Below are positions 248 to 25,347 of a stretch of 64,000 bases of DNA, in pieces. The notes beneath the pieces were generated by a model. It saw only the letters and a list, made by a program, of their open reading frames with translations, made no database searches and had not been told where the DNA came from. The position numbers and the translations under genes were made by a program. This DNA is from Macrostomum lignano. Lineage: Eukaryota. Positions within the stretch are counted from its first letter, which is position 1, and each line of letters starts with the position of its first letter. The stretch spans positions 248,001 through 312,000 of the forward strand of contig NIVC01000874.1 of the NCBI GenBank assembly GCA_002269645.1, read 5' to 3'.

Positions 248-340
248 CAGCGTAGATGAAGCTGTCCGCAGGTACCAGATGTTCGCCTTTAGGTTTCTTT
301 CTTGGTAGTAAAAGCAGAGACACGCGTTTTCTGAGACAGC
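248..340 (-). CDS. dlg1: Probable dlg internal exon (93 bp, phase 1-1; GCLRKRVSLLLLPRKKPKGEHLVPADSFIYA)
   Basis: Acceptor ttttgctttcag and donor GTGAGT on the minus strand; open in the frame handed on by the phase-1 donor at 2902. No recognisable domain, so assignment rests on phase and strand only. Confidence 0.5.
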
Positions 341-2904: not shown

Positions 2905-2987
2905 GCAGACTGATCATTCGGACTCTCACCAGGTGCAAATTCTAATGCCGCAGTGTCGGTGGGCAAGAGCTGCTGCTGCTGCTGCTG
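2903..2987 (-). CDS. dlg1: dlg exon segment 3' of the LINE insertion (QQQQQQLLPTDTAALEFAPGESPNDQSA)
   Basis: CAG tract continues in frame with the CAG/CAA tract at 5059-5076 on the other side of the LINE; ends at donor G|GTGTGT. Confidence 0.65.
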
Positions 2988-2990
2988 CTG

Positions 2991-5058
2991 TGTGTGTCTT
3001 CGGCTGGGCGGGTTCCCTCATTGCACCCACTCAGGGTGCGTGCACTTCAGGAACCCTAGCACCTTCGCTTCATCTCCCAGATCCTCCAGACCTTGAATAC
3101 CAAAACGCGCCCTCTCCTTATGCCACCTGTCGCACCACACCCAGTGGTCCTTGTCCTCTTCCTCACCGCAGTCCTGACAACTCGCCTTTGCCTCAGCACC
3201 GATTTTTTGTCGCCAGTAGGCCGTCTTCTTGCATTGACCACATCTGAGTTGGGCGAGTGTGGTCTCCGTGCTACGATTTTCAGCGCATTTGTTAGTTTTG
3301 TGCTTGTAGACCCTACGGAGACGCTCATCAGAGGGCGGGGGCGCCGGCTCCTTCCTGATGGCCGCCTTTACACAGTTCCACATGACGGGGACGTCGTCCT
3401 GCGGTAGAGCCGCTGCTTCCTTAGCCTCCTGGTCGACATCCTCGTTGCCCGCGACACCAACATGACCGGGTACCCACTGCAGCACCACTCTGGTAACTTG
3501 GCTAATCTCACGGAGTCTACTGATCAGGCGGTACGACGTGGTATCCTGGGTAGCTTTCTCGCTGCTGAGCTTGAGGAGGGCCGATTTACAGTCCGTCAGG
3601 ATGATGGCATTTCGCGGCTTGGCCTCCGCAATGGTATCCAGTGCCAGCTCCAGGGCTCGCTCCTCCGCAACCAGGGAGCTGCACCACTCCCCGGCCGCCG
3701 CTTTCTTGACGCGTCTCTCCGTGTCAAAGTACACGACACAAGCTGCACCACCCTTACGCTGCCCTTCTCCAACAGACCCATCCGTGTAGATTGACAAATC
3801 GAATTCGCCCCAGGCGTTAATGGTGTCGATCGTCTCTGTGGCGAGGTTGCTGTCACCCTTCTTTCCTCCGCGAATAAGCTCCGTAGCGATCACGACGCCG
3901 TCCATATGTAGCCGTCTCCACGGCGGGTGTCTCTTTCTGGTGAAGCCCTCTCTGGGGTGGGTCGACCTCCTCAGGCATTCCTCTCTGGCCTGATCCCTCC
4001 ACCCTTTGTTCGCCTGAAGTCTGCGGTTTCCGGTTCTTTCACTACACTCCCTGAGCGGGTCTCCCTCTGGGGCTCTGGTGGCCTTTTCCCAGGCCAGCAT
4101 CGCCCTTTTGCGCGCTTGATAACGGATCGGCTCGATATTAGTCTCCACGTACACCGCTTCAATGGGGTGGAACGCACCAGTCCCGCAGCTAGACGGAGAC
4201 ATTCTCTCTGAGCACGTTCGAGTTTTTCAAAGCTAGTGCTGGACAGCCAGGGGAGCCACGCTGGGGCGCAGTACCAGATACAACTCTCAACAATACTTTT
4301 GTAGATCAACAGGAGTTCCTCGGTCCTCCAGCCCCAGCTGGTATTAGCCAGGACACGGATAGCTCTAACTCTGCGTTTCATTTTGTTTAGCACGGCCTCC
4401 GTATGAGCCGCGAACGTTAAGCCGCCATCGATGGTGATACCCAGGTATTTAAGTTTCCTCACAGTGGCGATAGTGCGGCCGGCGATCGTGAGTCCCGTGA
4501 CAGCAGACTTGTCCTTAGGAGATCTACTAAAAATACAACATTCGCATTTGGTTGGATTTAGCTCTATCTTCAGCACTTTGGCCCACCTCTCGATCTTAAT
4601 CAGCGCTCTCTGGATGGTATCTCTGACCTCCGAGTACACGGTACCAGAGGCCCAGATGGCGAGGTCGTCGGCGAAGCCGCCATATTCCACGCCCTGCTCG
4701 GTGAGGCCGTTCCAGCCGTTAGCGTAAAGGAGGAATAACGCTGGGGAGCTCACCGCTCCTTGCGGCAGTCCCTCCTGGAAGCGTCTGAATTTGCTGGTCT
4801 CATCGCCCACGCGCACTCTGCCTTTGCGGTCCTCCAGGAAGCTGGCGAACCACTTAACGAGGTGCGCTGGGACTTTTTCTTCCAGCATTCTATCCATCAA
4901 TTTGACCCGCCACACTCTCTCGTATGCTTTGGAGCAGTCCAGGGTGACGGCAACGGTCTTGAGCGGGCGGCGCTCCTCCCAGCCATCCTGGATGGATTGC
5001 ACTAACCGGATCACTTGCTCTTCAGTGCTGCGGCCTCTTTGGAAGCCCGCCTGCCAAC
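2991..5058 (-). mobile_element. 5'-truncated non-LTR retrotransposon (RT + RNase H + C-terminal Cys/His motif; I-group-like)
   Basis: RT motifs WQAGFQRGRST, LDCSKAYE, GLPQGAVSSP, FADD, YLG; RNase H motifs IYTDGS, LTDCKS, WVPGH; CQDC...H..WC. One frameshift near 4160 in a C-run. 12-bp direct repeat ACAGCAGCAGCA (minus strand) at both ends; short (AC)n tail. Confidence 0.93.
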
Positions 5059-5390
5059 TTGCTGCTGCTGTTGCTGATAGCGCTCTGAGGACTCCGCAGC
5101 AGCCTCCGCAGCAGCCGCCGCGGCAGCCTCCTCGGCCTCCTCCTCCATGCCGATGAGCACCGCCAGCTGCTCGGGGCTGGGCTTCACCACAGACAGCAGG
5201 ACCTCCTGGCCGGTGCGCTTCAGTGCCGCTACCGCCTCCTCGTGGGTGACGCCGCGCAGGGAGGCGCCGTTCACCGACACAAGGCGGTCGCCGACAGCGA
5301 TTCGGCCGTCCAGTTGTGCGGCGCCGCCTTCGATCAGCTTCGTGATGAAGATGCCGCTGTCGCCTGGCAGGTGCTCGTTGTGCATTCCGC
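5059..5390 (-). CDS. dlg1: dlg exon encoding most of PDZ2
   Basis: GGMHNEHLPGDSGIFITKLIEGGAAQLDGRIAVGDRLVSVNG...VTHEEAVAALK matches Dlg PDZ2; acceptor tccctcag is phase 1, joining FSIA-G of the previous exon. Confidence 0.92.
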
Positions 5391-5404
5391 CTGAGGGACG
5401 ATTG

Positions 5405-5900
5405 AGTGGGTCAGCGACTGGTTAATGTGGATCAGCGACTGGTTAATGTGGGTCAGCGACTGGTTGATGTGGGTCAGCGACTGGTTGATGTGGGTCAGCG
5501 ACTGGTTAATGTGGGTCAGCGACTGGTTGATGTGGGTCAGCGACTGGTTGATTTGGGTCAGCGACTGGTTGATGTGGGTCAGCGACTGGTTGATTTGGGT
5601 CAGCGACTGGTTAATTTGGGTCAGCGACTGGTTAATGTGGTTCAGCGACTGTGTGATGTGGGTCAGCGACTGGTTAATGTGGTTCAGCGACTGTGTGATG
5701 TGGGTCAGCGACTGGTTAACGTGGGTCAGCGACTGGTTGATGTGGGTCAGCGATTGGTTAATGTGGGTCAGCGACTGGTTAATGTGGGTCAGCAAATGGG
5801 TGATGTGGGTCAGCGACTGAGTGATGTGGGTCAGCGACTTGGTGATGTGGGTCAGCGACTGAGTGATGTGGGTCAGCGACTGGTTGATGTGGGTGAGCGA
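5405..5900. repeat. 21-bp intronic minisatellite (GTGGGTCAGCGACTGGTTRAT)n
   Basis: About 23 copies filling the 5391-6083 dlg intron. Confidence 0.95.
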
Positions 5901-6083
5901 CGGGGTCAGGTGACTCAGTCAGGTAGGTCAGAGACTAGGTCTAGTGAGTCAGAAATGGGTCAGGACCTGAATGGAGTGGGTCATGGTACTAAAGGCAATA
6001 CTACAGAAACAAGCAGAGACGGCATGTGTGCCACCCATTTTTGGCATTTAATGGAGCAAGCATTAAGGGCGGCAGCCCCTCAC

Positions 6084-6697
6084 CGGCAATGCTGAAGCCG
6101 AGGCCCCTGGCCGTCTTGTTCAGCAGCACGCGAGTCTCCTGCTGATGCTCGCCGAAGATCGCCGAGGCGGCAGCGCCCAGGACGGCGCCAGCGGCCGGCA
6201 GCGGCGGGGTTGGCGCGGGTCCCCGCAGCACCAGGAGGCGCAGGCGGCTGCCCGCCAGCTTCAGCGCCTCCACAGCCTCTGCGTGGGTGACACAAGAGAC
6301 GTCGACGCCGTTGACCCGAAGCAGCGCGTCGCCAACAGCCAGGCGGCCTTCGGCGGCTCCGCCGGGCACCAAGCGGGTGACGCGGATCCGTGGGTCCTCG
6401 GCGGCCGCCGCCGGCGCCGGGGCGTCCGAGCCGCCGGCGATGCTGAAGCCGAAGCCGAGGCCTGACCGCTCGAGCGTCACCTCGAAGGTGGACGCCGGCT
6501 GCGTCAGCGACGAGGCCGACGGCGAGGCGGCGTCTTCGCTCGGTGGCAGCGGCGGAGGCGGCGTGGGCGGAGCCGGCCGCTGCAGATGTTCGCCGCCGTT
6601 GTTGCGGCCGCCGCTGAAGTCCGCCAGCTGGTCAAAGTCGCGCTCGGAGGTCGGCGCGGCGAACTGATGATTTTGCTGCTGCGGGCGACGGTGACAG
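6084..6697 (-). CDS. dlg1: dlg exon encoding PDZ1 and the start of PDZ2
   Basis: FEVTLERSGLGFGFSIAGG...IRVTRLVPGGAAEGRLAVGDALLRVNGVDV...THAEAVEALK, then LNKTARGLGFSIAG; donor G|GTGAGG at 6083. The 5' acceptor position is tentative. Confidence 0.9.
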
Positions 6698-7134
6698 CTG
6701 ACTGACTGACTGACTGACTGACTGCCTGACTGACTGACTGACTGACTGACTGACTGACTGACTGACTGACTGACTGACTGCCTGCCTGACTGCCTGACTG
6801 ACTGCCTGACTGACTGACTGACTGACTGACTGACTGACTGACTGACTGACTGACTGACTGACTGACTGACTGACTGACTGACTGACTGACTGACTGACTG
6901 ACTGACTGACTGACTGACTGACTGACTGACTGACTGACTGACTGACTGACTGACTGACTGACTGACTGACTGACTGACTGACTGACTGACTGACTGACTG
7001 ACTGCCTGACTGACTGACTGACTGACTGACTGACTGACTGACTGACTGACTGACTGACTGACTGACTGACTGACTGACTGACTGACTGACTGACTGACTG
7101 ACTGACTGACTGACTGACTGACTGACTGACTGAC
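6698..7134. repeat. (CTGA)n tetranucleotide microsatellite, ~105 copies
   Basis: Direct reading, with occasional CTGC variants. Confidence 0.97.
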
Positions 7135-7349
7135 TATAAAGATCTCCCAGCAGAATTTACCAGAGCCAGCCAAGCCGCCTGCTTCGCTAGCAGTGACCCA
7201 CCCCTGTCCTCCCCGCCAGCGCAAATTGGCCGTGAACCCCCCCCCCCCACCCCAGGGGCCTCATTAAACAGGCGGTCAGGGTGTGGGCTGGGGTTGGGCA
7301 ATAAAAGGCTGTGGGATTCGCCGGAATCGCCGCCGGCAGCCGGGATTTA

Positions 7350-8594: not shown

Positions 8595-9790
8595 CCCCTC
8601 AGCTGACCCCCCTGACAGCTCAGCTTCATTTATCATAGGCATAAGTTTGACTCCCTCAGCTGACCCCCCCCTGACAGCTCAGCTTCATTTATCATAGGCA
8701 TAAGTTTGACTCCCTCAGCTGACCCCCCTGACAGCTCAGCTTCATTTATCATAGGCATAAGTTTGACTCCCTCAGCTGACCCCCCTGACAGCTCAGCTTC
8801 ATTTATCACAGGCATAAGTTTGACTCCCTCAGCTGACCCCCCTGACAGCTCAGCTTCATTTATCATAGGCATAAGTTTGACTCCCTCAGCTGACCCCCCT
8901 GACAGCTCAGCTTCATTTATCATAGGCATAAGTTTGACTCCCTCAGCTGACCCCCCTGACAGCTCAGCTTCATTTATCATAGGCATAAGTTTGACTCCCT
9001 CAGCTGACCCCCCCCCCTGACAGCTCAGCTACATTTATCATAGGCATAAGTTTGACTCCTTCAGCTGACCCCCCCTGACAGCTCAGCTTCATTTATCACA
9101 GGCATAAGTTTGACTCCCTCAGCTGACCCCCCCCTGACAGCTCAGCTACATTTATCATAGGCATAAGTTTGACTCCCTCAGCTGACCCCCCTGACAGCTC
9201 AGCTACATTTATCACAGGCATAAGTTTGACTCCCTCAGCTGACCCCCCCTGACAGCTCAGCTTCATTTATCACAGGCATAAGTTTGACTCCTTCAGCTGA
9301 CCCCCCCCTGACAGCTCAGCTACGTCGTAGGCATAAGTTTGACTCCCTCAGCTGACCCCCCCTGACAGCTCAGCTACATTTATCACAGGCATAAGTTTGA
9401 ATCCCTCAGCTGACCCCCCCCTGACAGCTCAGCTACATTTATCACAGGCATAAGTTTGACTCCCTCAGCTGACCCCCCCTGACAGCTCAGCTTCATTTAT
9501 CACAGGCATAAGTTTGACTCCCTCAGCTGACCCCCCCCCTGACAGCTCAGCTACGTCGTAGGCATAAGTTTGACTCCCTCAGCTGACCCCCCCTGACAGC
9601 TCAGCTACATTTATCACAGGCATAAGTTTGACTCCCTCAGCGGACCCCCCCTGACAGCTCAGCTACATTTATCACAGGCATAAGTTTGACTCCCTCAGCG
9701 GACCCCCCTGACAGCTCAGCTACATTTATCACAGGCATAAGTTTGAATCCCTCAGCTGACCGCCCTGACAGCTCATCTACATTTATCACA
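8595..9790. repeat. ~57-bp minisatellite with variable C-run, ~20 copies
   Basis: Unit ctcagctgac(c)n tgacagctcagct(t/a)catttatca(t/c)aggcataagtttgactcc. Confidence 0.95.
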
Positions 9791-10499
9791 GGCACAAAAC
9801 TCTCAACTGCCCCCCCCCCCCTGACAGCTCAGCCTCACTACTCAGAGGCACTGGACTAGAACAGGCAGTCCCCCTATAGAACTGATAAGTATGAAAAGCC
9901 AGTCTATTAATATCGGTAATTAAGTCGGGAAGCCATGTACATGCAAGCGAGGCCATACCGAAGCCCGCCATCCATCACCCAGCGGCCGATCGCCCATTCC
10001 CCCATCCGACCTCGGCTGGAGGAACTTTGCTTTCGCCGCCACGTCGAGTCTGTTAATCAACTGGGACAAGAGAGTGGAGAGGGGACAGGATGGGAAAATG
10101 GGATCGCTGGGATGCAGCTGGGATTATATTGAATACCCCCGGCCTGCTCAGACAGCAGGCTCCTCAGCGCTAATCATAATTAACATTCCAGCCGGCATCT
10201 CCCACTCAATCAATCCCCGATCCCCGGGATGCCGCGGACGAAACCGAGATTGCATTAAAGACACGGCGCGCACGCGCCACCAGATTACATTACAGACTGC
10301 GGAAACAATGCCGGGAAGGCCGTCCCGATCCCCATAGCAACCAACTCAAAATGGCTTGGACTTGACCCTGCCAATCACTGCAATGCCATGCCATATTTAT
10401 CCAGTTTTGAGTCGTTCCTGCCCCCACTAAAAAATCCCATTTTCATTAATCTGGCTGGGCAAACTTGCTCGGGTCCGCCCTGCCTATCTTGCCATCCCC

Positions 10500-11480
<981 letters not shown>

Positions 11481-12029
11481 TCTACCCGATTACAGAGCCA
11501 AGTTTCGGCGCAAATTTCATAGTAGCCCTGAGGAAGAACATAAAATATTCCAAATATCGGCACTTGCTTCGCTTAAGCATCTGCGTTACCGCGTCAGTGT
11601 TTTGGGGTTTTGAGGACTCTTCCTTCTCCCCCCTCCATCTGCCCGATTTCAGTTTTGGGGCAAAGTGCAGCCCGGCAGAGGCTGAGCGAACACAACTGCA
11701 CTGCCTCCTGGCTAAGCGGTCAGTAATAAGCGGGGCCACAGTGGCTCTCTGACCCCCTGTGCCCCACGCCTCTCTCTGGGCTAATTTATTCAGCCATGAT
11801 TTGCCACCACAGTCGGCACTTGCGGAATCTTTTCAGCTGCTCCTTCTAGAGCCAATTTTTTTGGGGGGGGGGCTAGAAATATGGAATAATAAATGAGATA
11901 TGGTTAATCACAGATGCGAAACATCGATAATCACGGGGTGAAATATTGATTGACACATGAGAAATTAATAATCACACATGGGATATTGAAACACGAGATA
12001 ATCGCACGTGAGGTCCGGATAATCACATA

Positions 12030-12700
12030 CAAGATATGGATAATCACATGAGATATGGATAATCACATGAGATATGGATAATCACATGAGATATGGATAA
12101 TCACATGAGATATGGATAATCACATGAGATATGGATAATCACATGAGATATGGATAATCACATGAGATATGGATAATCACATGAGATATGGATAATCACA
12201 TGAGATATGGATAATCACATGAGATATGGATAATCACATGAGATATGGATAATCACATGAGATATGGATAATCACATGAGATAGATAATCACATGAGATA
12301 GATAATCACATGAGATATGGATAATCACATGAGATATGGATAATCACGAGATAGATAATCACATGAGATATGGATAATCACATGAGATATGGATAATCAC
12401 ATGAGATATGGATAATCACATGAGATATGGATAATCACATGAGATATGGATAATCACATGAGATATGGATAATCACATGAGATATGGATAATCACATGAG
12501 ATATGGATAATCACATGAGATATGGATAATCACATGAGATATGGATAATCACATGAGATAGATAATCACATGAGATAGATAATCACATGAGATATGGATA
12601 ATCACATGAGATATGGATAATCACATGAGATATGGATAATCACATGAGATATGAATAATCACATGAGATATGGATAATCACATGAGATATGGATAATCTC
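12030..12700. repeat. 19-bp minisatellite (GATAATCACATGAGATATG)n, ~35 copies
   Basis: Direct reading. Confidence 0.96.
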
Positions 12701-12721
12701 ACGTCAGACATAAACAATCAC

Positions 12722-12885
12722 CTGCAACTGAGCCAGCCTGGCCAGGGAGGCAGCGGCGAGGCCGCCGGGCCCCGCCAGACCCTGAGAGTTGGACCAGCGC
12801 TCGGCGACCTTCATTGTCTCCAGCGTCTTCTGCTCTGTGCTCTTGCTGTCGTCCAGCAGAGTGGCTTCGTAGAATTCTTGAATCT
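12722..12885 (-). CDS. dlg1: dlg exon, second half of the L27 domain
   Basis: EIQEFYEATLLDDSKSTEQKTLETMKVAERW resembles Dlg1 DIQEFYEVTLLD; acceptor cgcgcag (phase 1), donor CAG|GTGATT (phase 0). Confidence 0.9.
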
Positions 12886-12934
12886 CTGCGCGGAATGGGA
12901 AATCAGGCATTGCGCTTTCACACCATGCAGTGAA

Positions 12935-13120
12935 ATCCTGCCAATACCATTCAGTGAACCCCTGCTGCCCCTGCCAATACCATTCAGTGAACCCCTACCA
13001 ATACCATTCAGTGAACTCCTGCCAATACCATTCAGTGAACCCCTGCCAATACCATTCAGTGAACCCCTGCCAATACCATTCACTGAACCCCTGCCAATAC
13101 CATTCAGTGAACCCCTGCTA
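12935..13120. repeat. 24-bp intronic minisatellite (ctgccaataccattcagtgaaccc)n
   Basis: About 7 copies within the 12886-13187 intron. Confidence 0.93.
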
Positions 13121-13187
13121 GCTCCAATCTTTCACCCAAACAGAGCTCAAGAACAAAAAGTACTTAAAACGCGATGAAAGTACAAAC

Positions 13188-13319
13188 CAAGAAGAGCATT
13201 GAAGAGCTTGGATTTGAATATTTTGATGACCCGCTCAATTGCACTGCGCAGTTGAATATCAGCAGGGGAGTTGAGCTGCCTGTGATACTCCTCCAGCAGC
13301 TCCAGGGCGCGGGTGGCGT
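13188..13319 (-). CDS. dlg1: dlg exon, first half of the L27 domain
   Basis: DATRALELLEEYHRQLNSPADIQLRSAIERVIKIFKSKLFNALL resembles Dlg1 DTQRALHLLEEY...[22 protein letters not shown]; acceptor aaacgcag, donor G|GTTTGT, both phase 1. The first (ATG) exon was not identified. Confidence 0.92.
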
Positions 13320-13539
13320 CTGCGTTTGGGAAAGACAATCAACTTAAGATAATTAATTTTGGGAGATAAAAAGTCAAAGTAGCAATCAGCGCCAAAAGAA
13401 AGGCGAGGGAGACAACAAAAGAAAGGTGTAATTTTTCTAATAAACAATTCGGGTCTATGAGAATGTCCCGCCGGAGGTTTACCCGAAAGCTTTTTCCTGT
13501 CGGACTTTCAAGTCAAATCCAATCGGATTTGAAATCTAG

Positions 13540-14437
13540 TCTAGTCTAGTTCTAATCTAGTCTCACTTTTAAATCTAGTTAATGTCTAGTCTAGCCTAAA
13601 CTAGTCTAATCTAGTCTTAGTCTAATCTAGTCTAGGCTAGTTCTAATCTAGTCTAGGCTAGTTCTAATCTAATCTAGTCTAGTCTAATCTAGTCTAGGCT
13701 AGTTCTAATCTAGTCCAGTCTAATCTAGTCTAGGCTAGTTCTAATCTAGTCCAGTCTAATCTAGTCTAGGCTAGTTCTAATCTAGTCCAGTCTAATCTAG
13801 TCTAGGCTAGTTCTAATCTAGTCCAGTCTAATCTAGTCTAGGCTAGTTCTAATCTAGTCCAGTCTAATCTAGTCTAGGCTAGTTCTAATCTAGTCCAGTC
13901 TAATCTAGTCTAGGCTAGTTCTAATCCAGTCCAGTCTAATCTAGTCTAGGCTAGTTCTAATCCAGTCTAGTCTAATCTAGTCTAGGCTAGTTCTAATCCA
14001 GTCTAGTCTAATCTAGTCTAGGCTAGTTCTAATCCAGTCCAGTCTAATCTAGTCTAGGCTAGTTCTAATCCAGTCTAGTCTAATCTAGTCTAGGCTAGTT
14101 CTAATCCAGTCCAGTCTAATCTAGTCTAGGCTAGTTCTAATCTAGTCCAGTCTAATCTAGTCTAGGCTAGTTCTAATCTAGTCCAGTCTAATCTAGTCTA
14201 GGCTAGTTCTAATCTAGTCCAGTCTAATCTAGTCTAGGCTAGTTCTAATCCAGTCCAGTCTAATCTAGTCTAGGCTAGTTCTAATCCAGTCCAGTCTAAT
14301 CTAGTCTAGGCTAGTTCTAATCCAGTCTAGTCTAATCTAGTCTAGGCTAGTTCTAATCTAGTCCAGTCTAATCTAGTCTAGGCTAGTTCTAATCTAGTCT
14401 AGTCTAATCTAGTCTAGGCTAGTTCTAATCTAGTCTA
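13540..14437. repeat. 36-bp minisatellite built from CTAG/TCTA sub-motifs
   Basis: Unit tctagtctaggctagttctaatc(t/c)agtc(c/t)agtctaa, ~23 copies. Confidence 0.95.
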
Positions 14438-14694
14438 GCATTGCCTATAGACTGTATTTTACTTGAAATTCCGACTGGAAACCCTGCCGGAAAACCTCGG
14501 CGGGAAAACCACAGCGGGAAAACTTCCTGAGGGAAAACCTTGTGCTCCCAAACAATACAATGTATAAAGCATTACAGTTAGTATTGGCAATTTTTTGAAG
14601 AAGAATGTTCAACGCAAATAGCATCAGTCCTAAAAGCCAACTATCTAGCCTAAGATATTAGCATCCGCCTTAAGTCTTAAATGTACCCCATCTT

Positions 14695-14830
14695 TGATTG
14701 AGCATTGGCATCTCATTGATTCCCCCTTGAGCATTGGCATCTCATTGATTCCCCCTTGAGGATTGGCATCTCACTGATTCCCCTTGAGCATTGGCATCTC
14801 ACTGATTCCCCCTTGAGCATTGGCATCTCA
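14695..14830. repeat. ~29-bp tandem repeat, 4-5 copies
   Basis: Unit ttgagcattggcatctca(t/c)tgattccccc. Confidence 0.85.
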
Positions 14831-15022
14831 GCAATCTCTGTTTTAATTTAGAAATCTTGTTTAGTACTAAACTTTAGAAAGTAATATTTAGAAAGTAATA
14901 TTAGTATATTTTATCCTTGATTTGTTACAATTCAATCACAAAAAATAATCAATATTACCTTTGAATGTTTGAATATAAATTCAAACACATGCACAGCTTC
15001 CAGAATTTTACCCGGCTAGTGT

Positions 15023-15633
15023 CCCTATAGGAAAAAGTTGTAAATCCGCGGACGGCGTCCGGCGCACTTTTGAAATTTTTCTAAAGCGCGGCGCGCGCAC
15101 AGGCGCGCAGCGCCTGCGCGGTGTGCGCGCGCTGCCTTTTCTTGCTGGCTGCTGCTCTAGCAAATACATATGCATGGAAAGGGGTCATCTAATACCTCTG
15201 TGGAAGGGGCCTATACACTTATAATTTATAAAGCTTAGAGATGTTCCGAAATTTCAATTTGAATTTTCCAAAATTAGAATTTTTATTAAGAGCAAATTTC
15301 AATTTCGAATAAAATTAGAAGTCAAAATTTGGAAGCTAAAATCGAAAAGTCAAAAATCGCTAAAAAAGCAGTAATTTCTGCTACATCTACGTGTATTTCA
15401 TTTTGCATAAGCAGTAAATCGAATGTAAAAAGTGAGTATTGGTCATACTAAACTTTGTTTTTCTGCGTTTTGATTTCGGAAAATTTCAATTTTGAGTTTG
15501 GAAAGTTAACAAATTTTGATTTCGAGGAAACTGCTCTTTCGGGACATCTCTAATTATCCTAAAGCGCGGGAAAATAATTTGACTCTATTCTAAAGCGCGC
15601 GTCCGCGGGTTTTCAACATTTATTCCAATAGGG
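15023..15633. mobile_element. Non-autonomous DNA transposon (MITE) with 8-bp TSD, hAT-like
   Basis: Imperfect ~30-bp TIRs CCCTAT(A/T)GGAA..GTTG.AAA.CCGCGGACG; identical 8-bp direct repeat GCTAGTGT at 15015-15022 and 15634-15641. Confidence 0.8.
15235..15553. mobile_element. Nested MITE with 16-bp TIRs (TTAGAGATGTYCCGAA)
   Basis: 15235-15250 and 15538-15553 are inverted with one mismatch; TA is the only matching TSD candidate. Confidence 0.65.
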
Positions 15634-17989
15634 GCTAGTGTAGCCTAATTTTTCACAAAAATGTGATATACCTACCAAGAGCCTTTTGCAGCATATCTTT
15701 GATTTGCATGTACTGTAATTTAAATTTATCTCTCTTTTGCTTAAACTCTTAAATGTTTTATCCATCTTTAGACTTTTTTCTAACTACAAAAAAGTTTTTT
15801 TTTATTCTATTTTCTATTTTTTCTTTTGTTAAAAGCACTTTATTTTGTAAATTTTTTAATTTTAACATTTAAAAACCTCTTGGCTAAAATTTAAAATATA
15901 GAAATAGCAAACAATACTATTTGGCAAATCTAAAAATGTGTGGATAAATTTGAAAAAGGTATACTGATTTATCTTGATTATTTTTCTTGAAAATTATTTT
16001 AAGCATACTTTAACATCCACTTCTTAAAATTGCATACTTTAGTCTAGAATCTAGATCATATAATAATGCATACTATTTTTAAAGAATAAAAATCTTATCT
16101 TAGCTGAATATATACCAATATATACCAAAAATAGAAAAAGCCTCAACTTGACATTTCTTTTGAAAAATTAATTACCAAAATATACAATAAAGATAATTAG
16201 AAGATTTATTTAACTAAAAAAGTAAAAATCTTTAAATACAAATTGTAATATTAAATAAGATTAGTAGTGATACTTTATCATTTTTATATAAAATATTAAT
16301 ATAAATAACATAAAATTTATATAAAAGCCAAAATTCAAATGAAGGCTTTTTGAATGCCAATTTTTTTAAAACAAAAAGCTAGTCTAATTTGGTATATCAA
16401 TATATATATATTCCAACATTAGTATATAATAAGTAATAACAAACCATAATAGTTAGTAATATTTATAATACATAAAAGATTAAAAAAACAAGCTCCAATC
16501 ACCGCTAAAGGTAAATTTTTGAAAAAAAAATTCTTATCATTTTGGACACTTAAAGTGTCAAATAAAAATTCAAAAAAGGAACATTGGATGCACTTTTATA
16601 TACTTACAGTTCAAAAAGTTCTATATATTAGGTGTCACCAAATTTGTCAACATCTTTACCTTAATTTTATCTTCATCATGGTTTACCTTACCATGCATTA
16701 TTGACAAATTTAGTCACTTGACAATACACTGTTGATTAGTTTTTATTTTTTACTATACACTAAAAATTGAAAGGCAAAGCCTACTGAAAAGATACATGTA
16801 AGATAAAAAAGGTGAATGGTTTTAGTTGATATTTATTTTTACAAGCTATTAAAAGCTAGAGATTTTAAACCTGTTGATTTTTTATACATTTTTAAATCTA
16901 AAGTCATACTCAAACAAAACCAAGTGTTAATGGTTAAGGTGATAAACAAAACTAAGATTAAATTTGCATTAAAGTGATCTGCTTCATTTGAGATTAGATT
17001 CAATAAAGCTTAATATTTGTAAAGCATATGCAGCATACAAACTATTATACCTGATACCCCAATAGCTCTTGATATACTTTTGTATCTGGATACTCAACTA
17101 TGTACAATGTGGTATTATTGTATATACTAGCATTGTAGCATTTTATATATAGCATTGATTGCCCAATTTGTTAGATTTTAAGTCATGTATGCACAAAAGC
17201 ATTTGGCATGTATATTCATGAAGTCATATTGAAGTCTAGCAATATTTTGCACATTTAATTAGTTATAAATATTTATGTATTGCATTATGGATGGAACAAC
17301 TTTAGATAAGTCTGTCTTGTTGACAAATTTGCTTAGCTTATTTTAACTGCTTATAAACTGATAAATTTCTTCCAATTTCCTAAATTTTAGGCCTGCTAAC
17401 AAATTAGATGTCAGATGAATTTGGTATAAGCCATTTATATTTGTAAAAAGGTTTTAGGAAAATCTAATCTAAGTCTAGCAAGGTAGATTTTGTGCTTAAC
17501 CAATTTCTATGCTATTACATTTTTAGCTTTTTTATATCTATATAAAAATATTTTGCACAAATAGAATAGACAAAACCTTTGCAATAATATCTAAAAAACA
17601 CAAAGTCAATCCAGATCTAAAAATAAAAGTATTTGAGATTCAGGATAATAATTGCTATAGACAATGTTTCCTAAATCTTTTTAGACATTCTAATTCAATA
17701 TTTTAAAAGTTGTTCCTTAATTGAAGATAACAAAGCAAACCTGCAAAAAATAAAAAAATAAAGAGTAAAGAAAAGTCTTTGGACTATATACAAAAAAAGC
17801 AAATAGCAAGTTCAGACAAATAAAAATCATTTAATAAAATTTTTTTTAAAAATCTTATTACATAGATACAAGCCCTTATTTACTGTTATAAAATCATTAT
17901 CTCTTTCTTAAATAGGCTTTTGGCAAAAAATACTAGGCCTAGCCTAGCCATAATATCCTTTACTAAAATTAAAGGAAATGCGTATCCCC

Positions 17990-18833
17990 ATGGTCCCATG
18001 CCAATAATTCCAATTTTATCCATATGGCCATCCTCAATGCCCGACTTTCTCGAATCACCTGGAGTTCAACCCAACTGGCAGCCACCTGAAACTGCCAATG
18101 GAAACGAGTCAGCCTTCCTCAAGCTTTACCTGCCGGACGATATGTTTGAAAATCTATGCAGATGGACCAATAGCAAGGCATGGAAGAGATATGAAGAGTG
18201 CAAGGCCATCGAGGCTGTTCCCAAAATTATCATGAGCTGGAAAGACTGCATGACTGATGAGATTCGCAAGGTGATCGGCATTATGCTTTTGATGGGTGTT
18301 GACAAGAAGCCAGAGTTGGCCCACTACTGGTCAAGTGATTCCATGTACTACTGCAACTTTCTGGCGCAACCATTCTCTCTTTTTTCAGGATAATGTGCAT
18401 AGCTTATATTATGGTTTGCGGGTTGTTTTTATAGTTGTTATTTCTTTCATTAGTTTCACACACTTTATTGCATTCTTTTGAACTCTCAAACAGTAATACT
18501 GTTACAACACCGGTATATCAGGTCCATCAACACACGTTCACATCAGTCCACATGTTCTTTTTATCAAATATATACACAATTCCCAATAATTTTCTGCAAA
18601 CAAAAGCCATGGCACGAAAACGGTCCATATTAGTCTGCAATGGCTGTGCTATCTATGCGAAAGGTGATGCAAACATAAACTAAATAATCGTCAGTTGGGT
18701 GCGGTTTTGCTGGCTTGGCATGAAACCATGCCATCAGTCTCGTCGTGGAGCGCAAAAATGCCTATGGCACAATTTTGGTCCAAGCCATTGGGAACGGATA
18801 TGTTGGCATAGTAGACTAGTCAAGAAAAGGTTA
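17990..18833 (+). mobile_element. Decayed, internally deleted piggyBac transposase
   Basis: FLKLYLPDDMFENLCRWTN...WKDCMTDEIRKVIGIMLLMGVDKKPELAHYWS matches the piggyBac (DDE_Tnp_1_7) N-terminal region; Cys-rich tail remnant at ~18600-18740; possible right end AAGG-TTAA at ~18833. Confidence 0.8.
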
Positions 18834-19671
18834 AACAAACTTAAATTCAACCTGCAGAAAAAAATGCAAAATTTACATTCTTAGCAATAATTTACACAAG
18901 TTTTATTCATTGTTAATTTTTAAAAAGCAAAAAGTTTATCATTGACTTTCTAGACTATACAAATTTTCCTTCATTTTACCTAAAAACTAAAAAGGGTTAA
19001 TTTATATTACAATTTTTATACACGGCATGAATTTATTCACCAAAATTGGTATGCCAAAAATTTCTTGAGCTCAAAGTGGTACGCCAAAGTGGTACACCAA
19101 AATAGCCAAACTTTTCAATGGTACACCAGAAAATTCCAGCTTACTTTCCTGAGTGTGGCTTAATTACCTTCCTGAGTGTGGGAATAAGCTGCCATGGGGA
19201 TAAGCTAGAAATTATTGACATGAATCTGTGGATGAAATAGGAATTATTGGCATGGGACCATGGGGATAAACACTTCCAAAATTAAATGTCTATAAGGCAA
19301 TGTTCTAGTTTCCTGCATTAAATTATTTTGACACCAAATTTTAAACAAATGAACCAAAACATGTTTACTAAAGTATACTTAAGATGTATGCAAGTCTTTA
19401 AACTGTGGAGGCCTTAAAAGCAGCATTACACAGTGTATTAATGGAGCAATGGTTCACCTAGTATAGGAAGTTGCTGAAGCAACTTATAATAGTCTCTTAT
19501 AATAGTCAGCTCTAGAGATGGGACTTAAAAAGCCAAAAAGGTCATCACTAGTACTATTTATAACTTTAGATGTAAAATTTATTAGTCAACTTAAACTTTA
19601 AGCATAAAGCTATAATTTTACTAATGTATACTTTAGTAAACGCATTTTGGTTTGTTTTGTTTAAAATTCAA

Positions 19672-20859
19672 TGAGCCTCTTCATATCGCCGGTTCAAAAA
19701 ATGGAACTGGTTCCAAACTGGTTCGACACTCTTCATATTGATGGTTTGAAAAACAGAATCAGTTCCGGAACATGGTTCTGGTTCTAGAATATGGTTTGAG
19801 AAATTTTCTCGAACTGTTGTCATGTTTACACTTTAACAGTAAAATATATTTGAAATCGTCAATTTTTTATTATTGTTATATAATTATTCCTTTTTTTTGT
19901 CATATCCAAGAGGAAACAAAGTCAAAGAACGACAAAATTAAATTGTAAAGACTGTCAAACATAAAATGGGTTCAAAGCTCCTGGCTCATTCCATATAAGC
20001 ATGGTCGTAACATGACAGGCTATTTTTACTTATAAAATGAAATCTAATAATAGAATATACTAAACCAATATTTTAAATGAAAGATTATTTTGTCTAGAAT
20101 ATATTTATAGAGTTTCATATAGATATCATCATTAGTATAGAAGTATAGATGCTATTAAACCTTAAATGACACTTATGGTCGTAACGACAGGATTTTTGAC
20201 ATATAGAAAGTAAAAGGTAAAAGTCTTATAACATTTTTCATTTTTGATATTTTGCAATACATTTTTTAAATTTGACTAAGAACATCTTTAGAAATCATAC
20301 TCTTTTATTAGAATATATAAACTCAAAAGGCAACAAAGATACAAAAGAAAAGGCAGCCTTATGGTTGTAACATTATGGTCGTAACATATTTTTTTCTGTT
20401 AATTCAGTAACTTTGAGGTACTAATACATTAAAAATATAATAGATTATTTGGTCACCAATGCTTTTATCTGATGATGCAAGTACTATATTTTCATCTATA
20501 GTTCGTTTCAACCTTCAAAAGCTTTCTATTTGTTTTTAAAAGGTACAAAATCTTAATGATGTCTTTTGCTTCGAAAAATGTCCAAATTTTTACAAAAATG
20601 ACTTTTTGCCAATTGATAACATACTAATCCAACATTTTATCATTTATTTATTCTTAGATTGTATATATTGTACATAAAAAACATTTGGTAAAAAAATAGG
20701 CTAATAAGGCAATGGCAAGCAAAAATATTGACTTTTTTTCTATTTTCCAAATATGTCCATCTTATATGGAATGAGCCTCCTCATTTCACACGTCACTGGT
20801 TCTGGTTCTAGAACTCGAATTAATTCTGGTTCTAGAACCGATTGCCGTGAAGAGGCTCA
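19672..20859. mobile_element. Probable MITE with 12-bp TIRs (TGAGCCTCTTCA)
   Basis: Perfect inverted 12-mer at 19672-19683 and 20848-20859, with GGTTCT(AG)AA subterminal motifs; TSD unclear. Confidence 0.55.
19983..20777. mobile_element. Nested MITE with 17-bp TIRs (GGCTCATTCCATATAAG) and 4-bp TSD TCCT
   Basis: Perfect inverted 17-mers at both ends; TCCT at 19979-19982 and 20778-20781. Confidence 0.8.
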
Positions 20860-21517
20860 GTGTCAAAGCCAAAACCAAAGATAAATACAAAAATGTAAAG
20901 CAACCAAAATTCTAGCTTATACCAGTGGAACTAAAATAGTTGGGGTAAAACTGTGCTTGTTCTTAATGATATAACTATAACAAGGTAGCTCACCTTGTTT
21001 TTTAATAGGCATCACGTCCTCTTGCTTCACATTATTTCGATGTGTAATGAATTACGAAAAAACTATGAAAAAATGCATGCAAAAAGTCAGGAAAGTTAGG
21101 ACCTAAAGCTACACATCTATAGACGTGCTAACTGTACATTTATTTACTTAGTCTTTATTTGGTCTATTCTTTTTACAGGTATCTCACGTGCTGACGTGTT
21201 TATTTTATAAGCTAACAGTTAATATTAAATTTTTTTAGTAGTAGTAAGAGAATTTGGCTCAGGCAATTAGCCTGTTTGGCCAATATATTATAGAGCTATG
21301 TATTTGGAATTTTCGAATATAGAAGTTTATAAAGACGATTTGACGACGATTTGCTGAGTTATTGTAAAAGATAAAGTATTTGAAAGCGCGCCAGAATTTT
21401 TACGGTATTTTTAGACGAAAAGTGACGACTAACAACTAACGAGTATAAATATTAATACAAAAATGAGTACAAATTACGAGGTATAGCTTTAATTGCGAGA
21501 TTACTTTGGTAAGCGAG

Positions 21518-21549
<32 letters not shown>

Positions 21550-21744
21550 GATGTAGTATTTTTGAAAGCGCGTGATATTTCAAAGCGTGAAAAACGAACA
21601 TAAACAATACTTCGAAAGAATTTTACTTTTAACGAATAACGACGATTTAAATATAGGAAATTAAAAAAGACAGTAAATGAATAAACAACTGAAAAGCGGA
21701 TTTGTTACACTGCTGATGTATCTGATTCAGTTTGTTTAACTGTT

Positions 21745-24700
21745 TTAGCTATTCATGACTTCATATATTTTAGCTACACCAGTGAGCTCTTTTCTGACTC
21801 TTTTTTCATTTGTAGCATATCCTATCTTGTGTATTTGATTGCTATTTAAGAGGTATTGACAGAAGTATTTTTTCCTGATCTCTTCAGTTTGTGGACATTC
21901 GGTCAAGTAGTGTAGAATGTCAGAACCATTTCGCGCTCCACACATTTTACATGGTTCTTGAGAAAAAAAGTTGGGTGTAATCTCGCATTTCAGTTTTAGG
22001 AGGGTTGTTAAGAATTTTTTGTTTCTAAATGTACATGGAAAGAAATCTGAAAGGTCGGGCCTGCAGATTTTTTTGTAGAGATAGGCGTTTTTGTAGAGTT
22101 TAATATGTTGCTGATTCTCTAGCTTTTGGCTAAGTTCTCTTTCTCTGTGTATCTTGAGGTGCTTTTTCACTAGGTATTTCTCGCTATTAAAGCTTTGGGA
22201 AAGTTTATCTTCAGTTAGTGCTTTTAGGTCTATACTTTCTAGTTTCTTTAGTACATTCATTTTCCATGGATTTTTTTGGCCGGTGTTTGAGTAGAAAATT
22301 TCTAGAGTCGTTTGGCAGAGTTTTTTGTGTCTAATCTTCAGCCAGTAGATGAGGTAGGTTTTAGCGATTCGTTGAGAGATTGGAGTAAGCTCAAGTTCTG
22401 ATGATACCACACTGTTGCTAGCAAATTTTGGTAGATTGAGGAGATATTTGTAGAATTTCAGCTGAATATTATCAATAGCTTTTGTATCAGACATGGTAGC
22501 CAGAGGGCCCCAGAGCTCACAACCGTAAGTGATAACGGGGGTAACAAGCGCGTCAAATAGTCTGCGAATGAGTGTGATGTCTAGGGACGTATTCTTTACC
22601 CTATGGAGTAGGGAAAACATGGCTGTATATCCCTGCTTAGTTTGGTGTTCAATACATTTTTTAAAGCTGTTTTTTGGTTCAAAAATAATTCCCAGGTATT
22701 TAAATTCATTTACTTCCTCTATTTCTTGGTTGTCGTAGTATATTTTTGTAGCAATGCTTTCTGTGTCGTTTTTTTGTCTGGTATTGCCCTGCATGAACTT
22801 TGTTTTGCTTGCGTTTACTTTCAAGTAATTTTGTTTGCAGTAATTTTCCATAGTCGTAAATGTGTCTTGAAGTTCGTCTTTGTTTTTAGCTAGAATGGCT
22901 TGATCGTCTGCAAAGAGTAGGATGAGTGGGAAAGCAGATCTCGTAAGAGAGCGCCTAGCGCTAGAGAGTTCAAGATATTCAACAATGTCGTCAATATATA
23001 GTTCAAAAAGGATGGTAGAGAGAGGGTTGCCTTGAAGAACACCTTTAGATATTGGGATTGGCTGGGTTTCATCATCATCATCATCATTTTTTAGAATGAA
23101 GCAGGCATTTTTATGCATGTTCTTGATAAGTTCCGTCATTTGACCTTTAATACCCTGGTTATCCGTTTTGTGCCAAAGGGTTGGTTGATTTAAGCTATCG
23201 AAGGCTTTTTCATAGTCAACAAATCCAATAAAGAGTTCTTCTTTGTTGTAGATGGATTGGTTTATAATGTTGTAAAGATTAAAACATTGGTCGATTGTGC
23301 TGTGATTGGGCTTGAAACCGTATTGGTATTTTGATATAAGATTGTTTGCGTATGCTAGGTTTTCGAGTCTGGATTTAATAATTTGGCAAAAGAGCTTGCC
23401 AAGAATTGGTTGAATGCAGATTCCTCTGTAATTGTTGGGGTCGGCACTGCTGCCTTTGTTTTTATAAATCGGATGAAGTGTATTTGTTATCCAACTAGTT
23501 GGGAAGGTTCCTTGTTTGAGTGCTTCGTTGAAAAGTGAGCATAGGAGGTCAGCAAGTTCGTTCTCGAGGTATTTGAGTGTTTCTACATATACTTTATCGT
23601 GCCCAGGTGCTTTGTCGGTTTTGAGCTTTTTAATATGTTTTATAACTTCTTCTTTGGTGAATGGGGCATTGAAATCCTCTAAATCAGCCAGAATAGGGTT
23701 GTCAAGGTGAAGATTGTATGATAGTCTAATGCTGCTGTCTTGTTCAGTTACAAGATTTTGAAAGTGTATGATAAATTTTTCATCAATTGTTACTCTGTTG
23801 TTTGAGGGATTTGGTGTTTTTAATAAGTTCCAAAGTTGTTTTGTATCGTTTTGAATAAAGGCTTGGTTGATCATGTTGTCTGCACAGAGAGTTGTTTCAA
23901 ATTTCCATGAAGTGAGCTTTTTTTCGTATGCTTTTTTGAGTTGTACTTTGCTTGAGAGGTTGTTGGGAGTAGGGAAGGTTTTATATCTTCTGCAGGCATG
24001 TCTAGCAGCGTTTCTTAAATCTTTAAGGAAGCGAGGCAGTGTTGAGCATAGTGGGTTCTTTATCTCTACTGTGATGTTGTTTTGAATTTGTCTAACTTTT
24101 CTACTTAATTCATTTATAAAAGCTGGGTTTTGTATGTCTAGATTTGTGATTTTGTCATTCATGTTTTTCAGGTCATTTGCGAAGTTATTGATATGTTTTT
24201 CTTGTTGCAGGTTGGGTTTATGTGACTTTTTTAGGACTCTATATCTCGTTTTCGAGTTATTGGTTGCTTGTTTAGTTTCTGTGATTTCCTCTGTGAATTC
24301 ACTTGATAGGGAGAGCACTATTTGGTTGTGGTCGCTAAAGTAGGTGTGGTTCTTTACTTTAAAGTCTTCGAGGTGTTGGAGTAAGCTGGTAGAGACGAAA
24401 CAGAGATCTATAACAGAGGAACCAGATTTTGAGAGAAAGGTGAATTCACCATTTGTGTCTGATAATGATCTACCATTGATTAGATGCAGGTTGTATGAGT
24501 CAGTAATCTGGTTAAGTAGTCTACCATTTTTGCAGGTTTTCTTGTCTTGGCTTTGTCTAGTAAGTGAGATGTTTTTTGCTCTGGTGGTATATATTGAATT
24601 TAAATCTATGTATGAGGTATTGTTTATATGAGCATTGAAGTCTCCAATAAGGAAGATGTTTTCTTCGGAGTGGTAAGCATCCAGGAGAATTGTTAACTGT

Positions 24701-25347
24701 TCCCAATTTTCTTCTTCATAATATTTTGAAGACAGTGGGGGTATATAGGAGTTTATTAAGGTAAAGCTTTTGTTTTTATCCTTTTTGTGTTTAAAATTTA
24801 GTGTCAAGAAGTTTTTATAATGTTTGAATGATTCTGTAACATTGTATTGTGTATCTAGTGACTTTTTGTAAGCTGTTAATAATCCACCAGAAGCTCTGCC
24901 AATGAATTTACAGCCTTTTTTGTTTGCAGGCTTTTGGTATGTCATGTAGTTTTCAGACAGGTTGTTGATTTTGAGTCGCTTGTTTTCATTTTTTGTGTCT
25001 ATTATCCAAGTTTCTTGAAGGCAGAGAATATTATTCTTAAAAATTGATTCAGTTTCCAGTAGTTCAAGTTTGGGAATCATCACAGAGTCTTTTATTGTGT
25101 AAAGTCCATTGATATTCCAGCTGCTAATAGTAAATTTTTCTTTATCAATTTTTTGGATAATATTAAATTCAAGGAGTTTTGATTTGATATTGTAAGGAAT
25201 TTTTTTGATCTTTTGAGCATTGTTATTTCTAATAGAAATGAGGTACTCTCTAGTGTATTGTATCCGCTTTTCATTTGCCTGGATAATATTTTGACTATTT
25301 TGACCATTAAGTGTTGGGGTATTTAAGTCACAGTTTACAGAGGAAGT
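21745..25347 (-). CDS. LINE ORF2: APE endonuclease + reverse transcriptase + C-terminal Cys/His motif (uninterrupted)
   Basis: ISSWNINGL, LCLQETW, LIGDFNAH, SVIDLCF, SDHNQI (APE); NYRGI, QYGF, VDYEKAFDS, GVLQGNPLS, LFADD, YLGIIF (RT); CKMC...HYLTEC. The frame is open for 88 codons upstream of the ORF-track start at 25083. Confidence 0.93.
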   Translation of the reverse strand, partial: TSSVNCDLNTPTLNGQNSQNIIQANEKRIQYTREYLISIRNNNAQKIKKIPYNIKSKLLEFNIIQKIDKEKFTISSWNINGLYTIKDSVMIPKLELLETESIFKNNILCLQETWIIDTKNENKRLKINNLSENYMTYQKPANKKGCKFIGRASGGLLTAYKKSLDTQYNVTESFKHYKNFLTLNFKHKKDKNKSFTLINSYIPPLSSKYYEEENWEQLTILLDAYHSEENIFLIGDFNAHINNTSYIDLNSIYTTRAKNISLTRQSQDKKTCKNGRLLNQITDSYNLHLINGRSLSDTNGEFTFLSKSGSSVIDLCFVSTSLLQHLEDFKVKNHTYFSDHNQIVLSLSSEFTEEITETKQATNNSKTRYRVLKKSHKPNLQQEKHINNFANDLKNMNDKITNLDIQNPAFINELSRKVRQIQNNITVEIKNPLCSTLPRFLKDLRNAARHACRRYKTFPTPNNLSSKVQLKKAYEKKLTSWKFETTLCADNMINQAFIQNDTKQLWNLLKTPNPSNNRVTIDEKFIIHFQNLVTEQDSSIRLSYNLHLDNPILADLEDFNAPFTKEEVIKHIKKLKTDKAPGHDKVYVETLKYLENELADLLCSLFNEALKQGTFPTSWITNTLHPIYKNKGSSADPNNYRGICIQPILGKLFCQIIKSRLENLAYANNLISKYQYGFKPNHSTIDQCFNLYNIINQSIYNKEELFIGFVDYEKAFDSLNQPTLWHKTDNQGIKGQMTELIKNMHKNACFILKNDDDDDETQPIPISKGVLQGNPLSTILFELYIDDIVEYLELSSARRSLTRSAFPLILLFADDQAILAKNKDELQDTFTTMENYCKQNYLKVNASKTKFMQGNTRQKNDTESIATKIYYDNQEIEEVNEFKYLGIIFEPKNSFKKCIEHQTKQGYTAMFSLLHRVKNTSLDITLIRRLFDALVTPVITYGCELWGPLATMSDTKAIDNIQLKFYKYLLNLPKFASNSVVSSELELTPISQRIAKTYLIYWLKIRHKKLCQTTLEIFYSNTGQKNPWKMNVLKKLESIDLKALTEDKLSQSFNSEKYLVKKHLKIHRERELSQKLENQQHIKLYKNAYLYKKICRPDLSDFFPCTFRNKKFLTTLLKLKCEITPNFFSQEPCKMCGARNGSDILHYLTECPQTEEIRKKYFCQYLLNSNQIHKIGYATNEKRVRKELTGVAKIYEVMNS

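Follow-up and report, generated by a model that had tools for sequence, protein, structure and literature searches.

The dlg copy of Macrostomum lignano described here carries a non-LTR retrotransposon (LINE) in its fifth exon and is very probably a LINE-truncated homeolog that is tolerated through redundancy. A 5'-truncated LINE was retrotransposed in the sense orientation into a run of Gln codons in the PDZ2–PDZ3 linker of one of the paralogous, probably homeologous, dlg copies. Transcripts of the LINE-bearing copy would run from exon 5 into the element, and translation would end 16 codons into the LINE to generate a 429-aa L27-PDZ1-PDZ2 protein that could not be joined to the PDZ3-SH3-GUK part. 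The disrupted copy would be tolerated since the genome retains at least one uninterrupted copy as well as a more distant dlg paralog. In this reading, the GT dinucleotide at the 5' end of the LINE and the AG dinucleotides beyond its 3' end reflect a coincidence of the truncation point and the host CAG repeat, and they do not function in splicing. We infer read-through as the main RNA fate of the LINE-bearing copy and redundancy as the reason why its disruption is tolerated.

Insertion site and its empty counterpart

The window, which is the whole 64-kb stretch of DNA that was analysed, is 100% identical to contig NIVC01000874.1 of the Mlig_3_7 assembly (GCA_002269645.1) of the inbred line DV1, and the host gene is located on its minus strand. 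Positions are given in window coordinates. A position at the NIVC01000874.1 locus (L002) equals 31013 minus the window position; for example, L002 position 26002 is window position 5011. The following host features surround the insertion:

6084-6678 (L002 24335-24929), minus strand: host exon 4, which encodes a linker, PDZ1 and the first part of PDZ2
5059-5390, minus strand: upstream part of host exon 5, which encodes the second half of PDZ2 (Pfam PDZ, E 7e-17), an Ala/Glu-rich linker and Tyr-Gln6
2930-2990, minus strand: downstream part of host exon 5, which encodes Gln7 LLPTDTAALEFAP G and ends at the good donor CTG/GTGAGA (GT at 2929-2928)
248-340 (L002 30673-30765), minus strand: host exon 6 of the short-isoform model, mapped from PAA77185.1 on the NIVC01000759.1 locus (L001)

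Exon 5 starts at the acceptor ccctcag/GCGGAATG (5391/5390), and its upstream part is identical to the corresponding residues of PAA75578.1. Ahead of the insertion, the minus strand reads GAG CGC TAT CAG CAA CAG CAG CAG CAA at 5079-5059. Directly after the last CAA codon, the insert begins with GTTGGCAGG at 5058 and reads GTTGGCAGGCGGGCTTCC onward. The insert ends with GCCGAAGACACACA at 2991 and is followed by a host-type (CAG)7 run at 2990-2970, after which the exon continues with CTC TTG CCC ACC GAC ACT GCG GCA TTA GAA TTT GCA CCT G to its end at 2930. A preliminary description of this DNA had let the insert start with GT right after a complete CAA codon at 5059/5058, and direct reading confirms this junction. 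The same description placed the 3' end of the LINE at 2988. A host CAG run does follow the element, but that boundary assigned the first host-type CAG to the LINE.

Is the insertion real? It is, and the proof is the empty paralogous site in NIVC01000759.1. This contig contains the same dlg gene with 1-4% mismatches in unique flanking DNA, and its exon 5 is uninterrupted. The empty site reads GAG CGC CAT CAG CAA CAG CAG GAG (CAG)5 CTC TTG in a single exon, which continues with CCC ACC GAC ACT ACG GCA TTA GAA TTT GCA CCT G to the donor GTGAGA. The second dlg copy, with which the preliminary description had proposed a comparison, thus carries the exon uninterrupted, and the earlier view that the exon is continuous without the LINE holds true. 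The L001 and L002 flanks are collinear over kilobases on each side of the LINE, and the LINE junctions are base-precise relative to the empty paralog, with a direct repeat at both sides. The exons of the two loci share 91-100% identity (full identity for exons 2 and 3, 97.5% for exon 4 and 95-97% for exon 5). The LINE-bearing copy is distinguished from the intact copy by T versus C at 5079, by C at 5134, by G versus A at 2951 and by a 12-bp Ala-tract insertion at ~5110-5121. Because precise excision is not a property of LINEs, the empty L001 site represents the ancestral state, and the insertion is later than the divergence of the two dlg copies.

What is the relationship between these two copies? 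The M. lignano genome is neopolyploid and comprises three paralogous subgenomes (S, L1 and L2), which exhibit an SNP divergence of 1.9-2.4% and differ mostly by indels (PMC10733133), and the Mlig_3_7 assembly contains 180-312 Mb of duplicated sequence (PMC5730564). The mismatch level between the two dlg copies agrees with the published subgenome SNP divergence and is in line with the reading that they are homeologs. In addition to these copies, a more distant dlg paralog is annotated with L27-PDZ1-PDZ2 only and has no PDZ3-SH3-GUK gene within 10 kb. The PDZ3-SH3 exon was also used as a query for a further or third-subgenome dlg copy, and zero M. lignano proteins were returned. The protein collection contains no transcript-derived proteins for this dlg beyond two 90% clusters, and a literature search found no paper on M. 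lignano dlg.

The direct repeat that flanks the LINE can be read as a possible target-site duplication (TSD):

5060-5070, minus strand: possible TSD, upstream copy CAGCAGCAGCA, by direct reading; its length is ambiguous within the repeat
2980-2990, minus strand: possible TSD, downstream copy CAGCAGCAGCA, which lies within the (CAG)7 run at 2970-2990

A direct repeat is thus present as described earlier, but not at the 12-bp length that was assigned to it, given that 11 bases match exactly and the 12th base is mismatched. Exact-match repeat lengths of 2 mod 3, up to 11, fit the junctions. The empty copy has 10 codons between His and Leu, and 6 + 7 Gln codons surround the LINE. The true duplication is probably ~9 bp, with 8 to 12 bp being compatible; its length cannot be fixed because the repeat sits inside a trinucleotide run. 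The TSD was also considered as an independent proof of insertion and was dropped, since any two (CAG)n stretches match each other.

A 5'-truncated LINE in the sense orientation

The element consists of the following features:

2991-5058 (2.07 kb), minus strand: 5'-truncated non-LTR retrotransposon (LINE), sense to the host gene, with ends good to ~3 nt
4430-4972, minus strand: reverse transcriptase (RT) domain with a FADD motif (PF00078 RVT_1, E 2.6e-23; residues 15-195 of the ORF at 3971-5014)
4164-4167, minus strand: C-run with the sole frameshift of the LINE, a 1-nt deletion; relatives read STPxE(A/I)(V/I)Y here
3411-3797, minus strand: RNase H domain (PF00075, E 1.4e-14; residues 136-264 of the ORF at 3018-4202)
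3132-3179, minus strand: C-terminal Cys/His (CCHC) motif of ORF2, CQDCGEEEDKDHWVWC, which aligns with CEDCNDIEQKDHWMVC of the relative P0121
3018-3020, minus strand: native ORF2 stop TGA, followed by a ~27-nt 3' UTR that ends with ACACACA at 2997-2991

The RT domain with its FADD motif, the RNase H domain, the Cys/His motif and the truncation, together with the empty site, identify the element as a non-LTR retrotransposon. A poly(A) tail is absent at its 3' end. The addition of one C at 4164-4167 restores a single 679-codon ORF that begins with the first complete codon and runs to the native stop, and the 1-nt deletion at this position could be either a genuine mutation or an assembly error in the homopolymer. 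Given that the ORF is intact save for this deletion, the insertion looks young.

Homology to the relatives begins exactly at the conserved WQAGFQRGRSTEEQ motif of the RT domain, with TGG at 5056-5054, and the residue that precedes the W of WQAGFQRGRSTEEQ differs among the relatives. Based on this variable residue and the start of homology, the 5' end of the LINE falls within 5056-5060, and thus the GT at 5058-5057 belongs to the element or was added without a template. Approximately 640 ORF2 residues, which cover the APE endonuclease and the N-terminal part of the RT, are missing, as is any ORF1. The APE domain (PF03372/PF14529), which is carried by the full-length relatives P0125, P0129, P0130 and P0134, was lost here by 5' truncation, and the LINE copy was dead on arrival.

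Searches of the 64-kb window with blastn and tblastn returned the LINE itself as a self-match and no second copy. The protein collection contains no LINE relative that is more than 55% identical, with the closest ones at 46-55%, and the exact products of both window ORFs, which are 394 aa and 124 aa long, have no database record. None of the hexamers AATAAA, ATTAAA, AGTAAA and TATAAA occurs on the LINE sense strand. Premature polyadenylation inside the LINE was considered as a candidate event and is not predicted, since the sense strand lacks AATAAA-type signals.

Predicted truncation of the dlg product

The public annotation splits dlg in two at both loci, with one L27-PDZ1-PDZ2 part and one PDZ3-SH3-GUK part. 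The upstream model contains L27_1 and two PDZ domains, and the next gene on the same strand contains PDZ, SH3_1 and Guanylate_kin domains, at both loci. A conceptual repaired protein, which comprises PDZ1, PDZ2, the linker, the Gln run and LLPTDTAALEFAPG, matches two M. lignano clusters at 96% identity, whose members are PAA75578.1 (BOX15_Mlig020722g1, 429 aa) and PAA77185.1 (BOX15_Mlig000031g2, 527 aa; intact copy). The repaired protein shares ~50% identity with vertebrate DLG1-4 over PDZ1-2, and DLG1-4 are its best named matches.

How does the upstream part connect to the downstream part? In the short model of the intact copy, exon 5 leads to two small exons and a stop. The separate 532-aa PDZ3-SH3-GUK model begins ~1.2 kb beyond the short model, and its CDS has no start codon and begins two bases after an AG (L001 30039, L002 34004). 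Exon 5 ends in the phase in which the PDZ3 model starts, so that the joined exons would read in frame as LEFAPGYFDDTIDC. This arrangement suggests that dlg may produce short and long isoforms or may have a trans-spliced downstream part. In either case, the LINE precedes both routes, and therefore the product would be cut to L27-PDZ1-PDZ2 plus 16 junk residues. These 16 LINE-derived residues represent an out-of-frame reading of the RT sequence. Exons 6 and 7 of the LINE-bearing copy are still open with intact splice sites, which is expected from a young insertion and equally from continued use.

The public gene models are consistent with read-through into the element, which reaches a stop shortly after the junction:

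5011-5013, minus strand: first in-frame host stop TGA inside the LINE, 16 codons past the junction (after VGRRASKEAAALKSK), and the end of the PAA75578.1 CDS

PAA75578.1 ends with ERYQQQQQQVGRRASKEAAALKSK before the stop at window position 5011 and is the longest recorded product of the LINE-bearing locus. The UniProt entry A0A1I8GZG2 ends with the same VGRRASKEAAALKSK and exhibits one substitution elsewhere relative to PAA75578.1. The LINE is spliced out in neither of these two public models of the locus; a LINE-spliced isoform would exceed the read-through protein by ~100 residues. The GenBank models were built with RNA-seq guidance using STAR, StringTie, TACO, TBONE and TransDecoder, and the pipeline allowed multimapping reads and kept an isoform only if it reached at least 75% of the major one (PMC5730564). 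As a result of this cut-off, a minor spliced isoform would be absent from the models. Reads from the intact paralog, when placed on the LINE-bearing locus, would mimic canonical GT-AG spliced reads. Because the intact-copy mRNA is continuous across the Gln run, only reads that contain variants of the LINE-bearing copy are informative. The case is useful mainly for annotation, in that PAA75578.1 terminates within a LINE.

These observations refine the earlier suggestion of a null allele or paralog. A disrupted paralog is supported by the insertion-free copy, the neopolyploid genome and the read-through models, but the term null goes too far, given that the truncated product keeps L27, PDZ1 and PDZ2.

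Alternative fates of the LINE-bearing copy

The truncated product may be useful in its own right as a dedicated short L27-PDZ1-PDZ2 isoform with a LINE-supplied C-terminus, which would represent subfunctionalisation rather than loss. We regard this as unlikely. In its favor, the annotation of the intact copy includes a short isoform as well, which runs through exons 6 and 7 and terminates after PDZ2, the distant dlg paralog is annotated with the same L27-PDZ1-PDZ2 content, and the annotated domains of the short form are all located upstream of the LINE. However, the C-terminus that the LINE supplies is out-of-frame RT sequence, the sense strand of the element offers no AATAAA or ATTAAA to end the transcript, and the LINE-bearing copy displays no sign of selection.

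Alternatively, the LINE could be a nascent intron that the spliceosome removes from at least part of the transcripts, from the GT at 5058 to a CAG acceptor. Such an event is very unlikely. If it occurs, splicing would be inefficient at CAA/GT to the CAG acceptors and would produce full-length Dlg with a variable Gln count, a specific outcome that is, if anything, less likely still. The in-frame GT-AG reading that the preliminary description pointed out is literally there: the GT at 5058-5057 directly follows a complete CAA codon, and each of seven in-frame CAG codons downstream contains an AG. The open exons 6 and 7 and their intact splice sites are also in line with splicing. Moreover, TE-derived introns are known, and ~5% of them derive from non-LTR elements (PMC12130899); one exonic LTR-retrotransposon insertion was observed to be spliced out whole in Arabidopsis (PMC12112155).

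However, the GT/AG coincidence comes at little cost. At 5.7% of the possible truncation points, the LINE would begin with GT, and multiplication by 1/3 for the codon phase gives 1.9%. When every in-frame GT ahead of the first in-frame stop is accepted, 67% of the combinations of truncation point and phase qualify. Every candidate acceptor AG belongs to the host CAG repeat and none comes from the LINE, and thus any sense insertion at this place obtains frame-preserving AGs downstream.

The candidate splice sites were compared with those of the six introns of the insertion-free dlg model (L001), which constitute a small sample. The real donors are TAG/GTAAAC, TTG/GTTTGT, CAG/GTGATT, CCG/GTGAGG, CTG/GTGAGA and CTG/GTGAGT, and all six have G at position -1. 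The candidate donor CAA/GTTGGC has A at this position and shares 5 of 9 bases with the consensus. A GTT donor is in use elsewhere in dlg, given that the real donor TTG/GTTTGT likewise matches the consensus at 5/9. All six real acceptors are CAG, and the stretch from -33 to -4 contains 4-14 T at a pyrimidine fraction of 0.53-0.67. The seven candidate acceptors exhibit a pyrimidine fraction of 0.33-0.43 with 0-1 T in the same positions, in agreement with the earlier remark that the acceptor lacks a pyrimidine tract, and they are indistinguishable from random AGs of the locus (n=1,042; mean pyrimidine fraction 0.40). The real dlg acceptors are C-rich, not U-rich. The candidate donor is thus at or below the weak end of the real donors of the gene, and the acceptor is at background. 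The motifs by themselves do not forbid splicing, and the donor alone is not disqualifying.

The intron gain that the preliminary description had considered is therefore disfavored by the acceptor at the level of random AGs, the weak donor and the cheap coincidence, together with the two public models, both of which read through and neither of which splices, and by the longest recorded product, which is the read-through one. No further LINE copy is found in the window, and none is seen to act as an intron.

An assembly artefact, in which a chimeric read or misassembly joined the LINE into the exon and only the uninterrupted copies are real, is conceivable for Mlig_3_7, a polyploid PacBio assembly rich in repeats for which chimeric scaffolds and collapsed or expanded paralogs are known (PMC10733133), but it is highly implausible in view of the base-precise junctions, the flanking direct repeat, the kilobase collinearity on both sides, the location of the LINE 5' end inside a conserved RT motif as predicted by 5' truncation, and the occurrence of the same read-through peptide in UniProt A0A1I8GZG2.

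Comparison with known systems

Removal of a transposon from an exon by splicing has classical precedents in maize, where Ds and dSpm insertions are spliced out of exons. The dlg LINE also resembles introners (PMC12130899, PMC11282704) in that an exonic mobile element starts with GT, has AG at or beyond its opposite end and could be removed in frame. However, introners form multi-copy, demonstrably spliced families with splice sites that are located in the element or co-opted via the TSD, whereas the dlg LINE is single in the window. Unlike introners, the dlg LINE has an acceptor AG that is pure host repeat without a pyrimidine tract, and the public models read through it. Among the classified introners, TIR DNA transposons account for ~82% and non-LTR elements for ~5% (PMC12130899). 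In Arabidopsis, an exonic insertion of the ONSEN retrotransposon is intronized whole, as evidenced by cDNA (PMC12112155). The concept is the same, but ONSEN intronization is based on cDNA, whereas the dlg LINE is known from sequence and its splice signals are poor. Intron gain by the dlg LINE is thus not a far-fetched idea, although it gains no support here. If the LINE were spliced after all, it would be a rare animal LINE-derived intron at birth. A coding trinucleotide repeat would then act as a ready-made array of frame-preserving acceptors, and the damage to this dlg copy would be lessened.

The host gene is organized like a Dlg/SAP97-type MAGUK, with L27, PDZ1 and PDZ2 upstream, followed on the same strand by PDZ3, SH3 and guanylate kinase. 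It is unlike this type in that the annotation splits the gene in two in both M. lignano copies.

The insertion in dlg is a further instance of the well-known exonic LINE insertion. As in ordinary insertions by target-primed reverse transcription, the element is truncated within the RT, is flanked by a direct repeat, retains ORF remnants in the sense orientation, has an empty counterpart site and introduces a premature stop. It differs from an ordinary LINE insertion in its target, which is a coding trinucleotide repeat, and in its 3' tail, which is ACACACA and not poly(A). The dlg case also resembles TE-driven homeolog fractionation, given that one duplicate is disrupted in a documented neopolyploid whose paralogs differ mainly by indels. 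The LINE-truncated dlg homeolog would illustrate the erosion of duplicate genes by transposon insertions shortly after the whole-genome duplication of M. lignano.

Organization and annotation of dlg

In both the LINE-bearing locus (L002, NIVC01000874.1) and its paralog that carries exon 5 without the LINE (L001, NIVC01000759.1), the public annotation divides dlg in two: one gene covers L27-PDZ1-PDZ2, and a second, with a 532-aa product, covers PDZ3-SH3-GUK and is located as follows:

L001 30039-37845, PDZ3-SH3-GUK gene
L002 from 34004, beyond the window start, PDZ3-SH3-GUK gene

At both paralogous loci, the PDZ3-SH3-GUK coding sequence has no start codon, and its first base lies 2 nt past an AG. 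This acceptor matches exon 5 in phase at the exon's end (window position 2930), and a full-length Dlg can therefore be read across the two annotated genes (...LEFAPGYFDDTIDC...). dlg could be a single gene that uses alternative 3' ends; equally, the division could arise from SL trans-splicing. A more distant dlg paralog, BOX15_Mlig020975g2 (NIVC01002173.1, 10001-20021), shares ~51% identity over PDZ1-2. No PDZ3-SH3-GUK gene is annotated within 10 kb downstream of it, and its own annotated domains are L27-PDZ1-PDZ2 only.

Intron composition

The G+C content is 25-40% at window positions of about 12000-28000 and 50-62% elsewhere. Much of this AT-rich block is intron 1, given the mapped positions of the dlg 5' exons:

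12722-12885, minus strand, dlg 5' exon
13188-13319, minus strand, dlg 5' exon
21012, minus strand, dlg 5' exon

Long tandem arrays crowd the dlg introns in the window, and several of them give rise to spurious long ORFs in the six-frame listing:

524-879, 48-bp x7 array
1621-2326, 17-bp x42 array
2843-2902, (AC)30, beginning 28 nt past the exon-5 donor
5402-5901, 21-bp x24 array
6698-7135, (CTGA)110, reaching ~20 nt short of the exon-4 acceptor
8596-9794, 57-bp x21 array
10499-11483, CT-rich array of 1 kb

Differences among dlg copies

Exon 6 of the window copy (window 248-340; L002 30673-30765) is distinguished from that of L001 (27495-27581) by +1 and +5 indels, which jointly preserve the overall frame and shift the ~22 codons in between, so that the stretch reads NACLCFYYQERSLKANIWYL in L001 and KRVSLLLLPRKKPKGEHLVPAD in the window copy. 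This indel pair would represent either a compensated frameshift or an A-run assembly error.

The M. lignano protein model A0A1I8GZG2 (UniProt) contains a LINE read-through identical to that of the window copy. However, in exon 4 it carries Ala instead of the window Thr (SSLAQPAST versus SSLTQPAST), a residue also present in the insertion-free copy, and it exhibits a short PDZ1 deletion relative to the window. These substitution and deletion patterns may reflect assembly noise, or A0A1I8GZG2 may derive from a copy in the third subgenome, likewise carrying the LINE.
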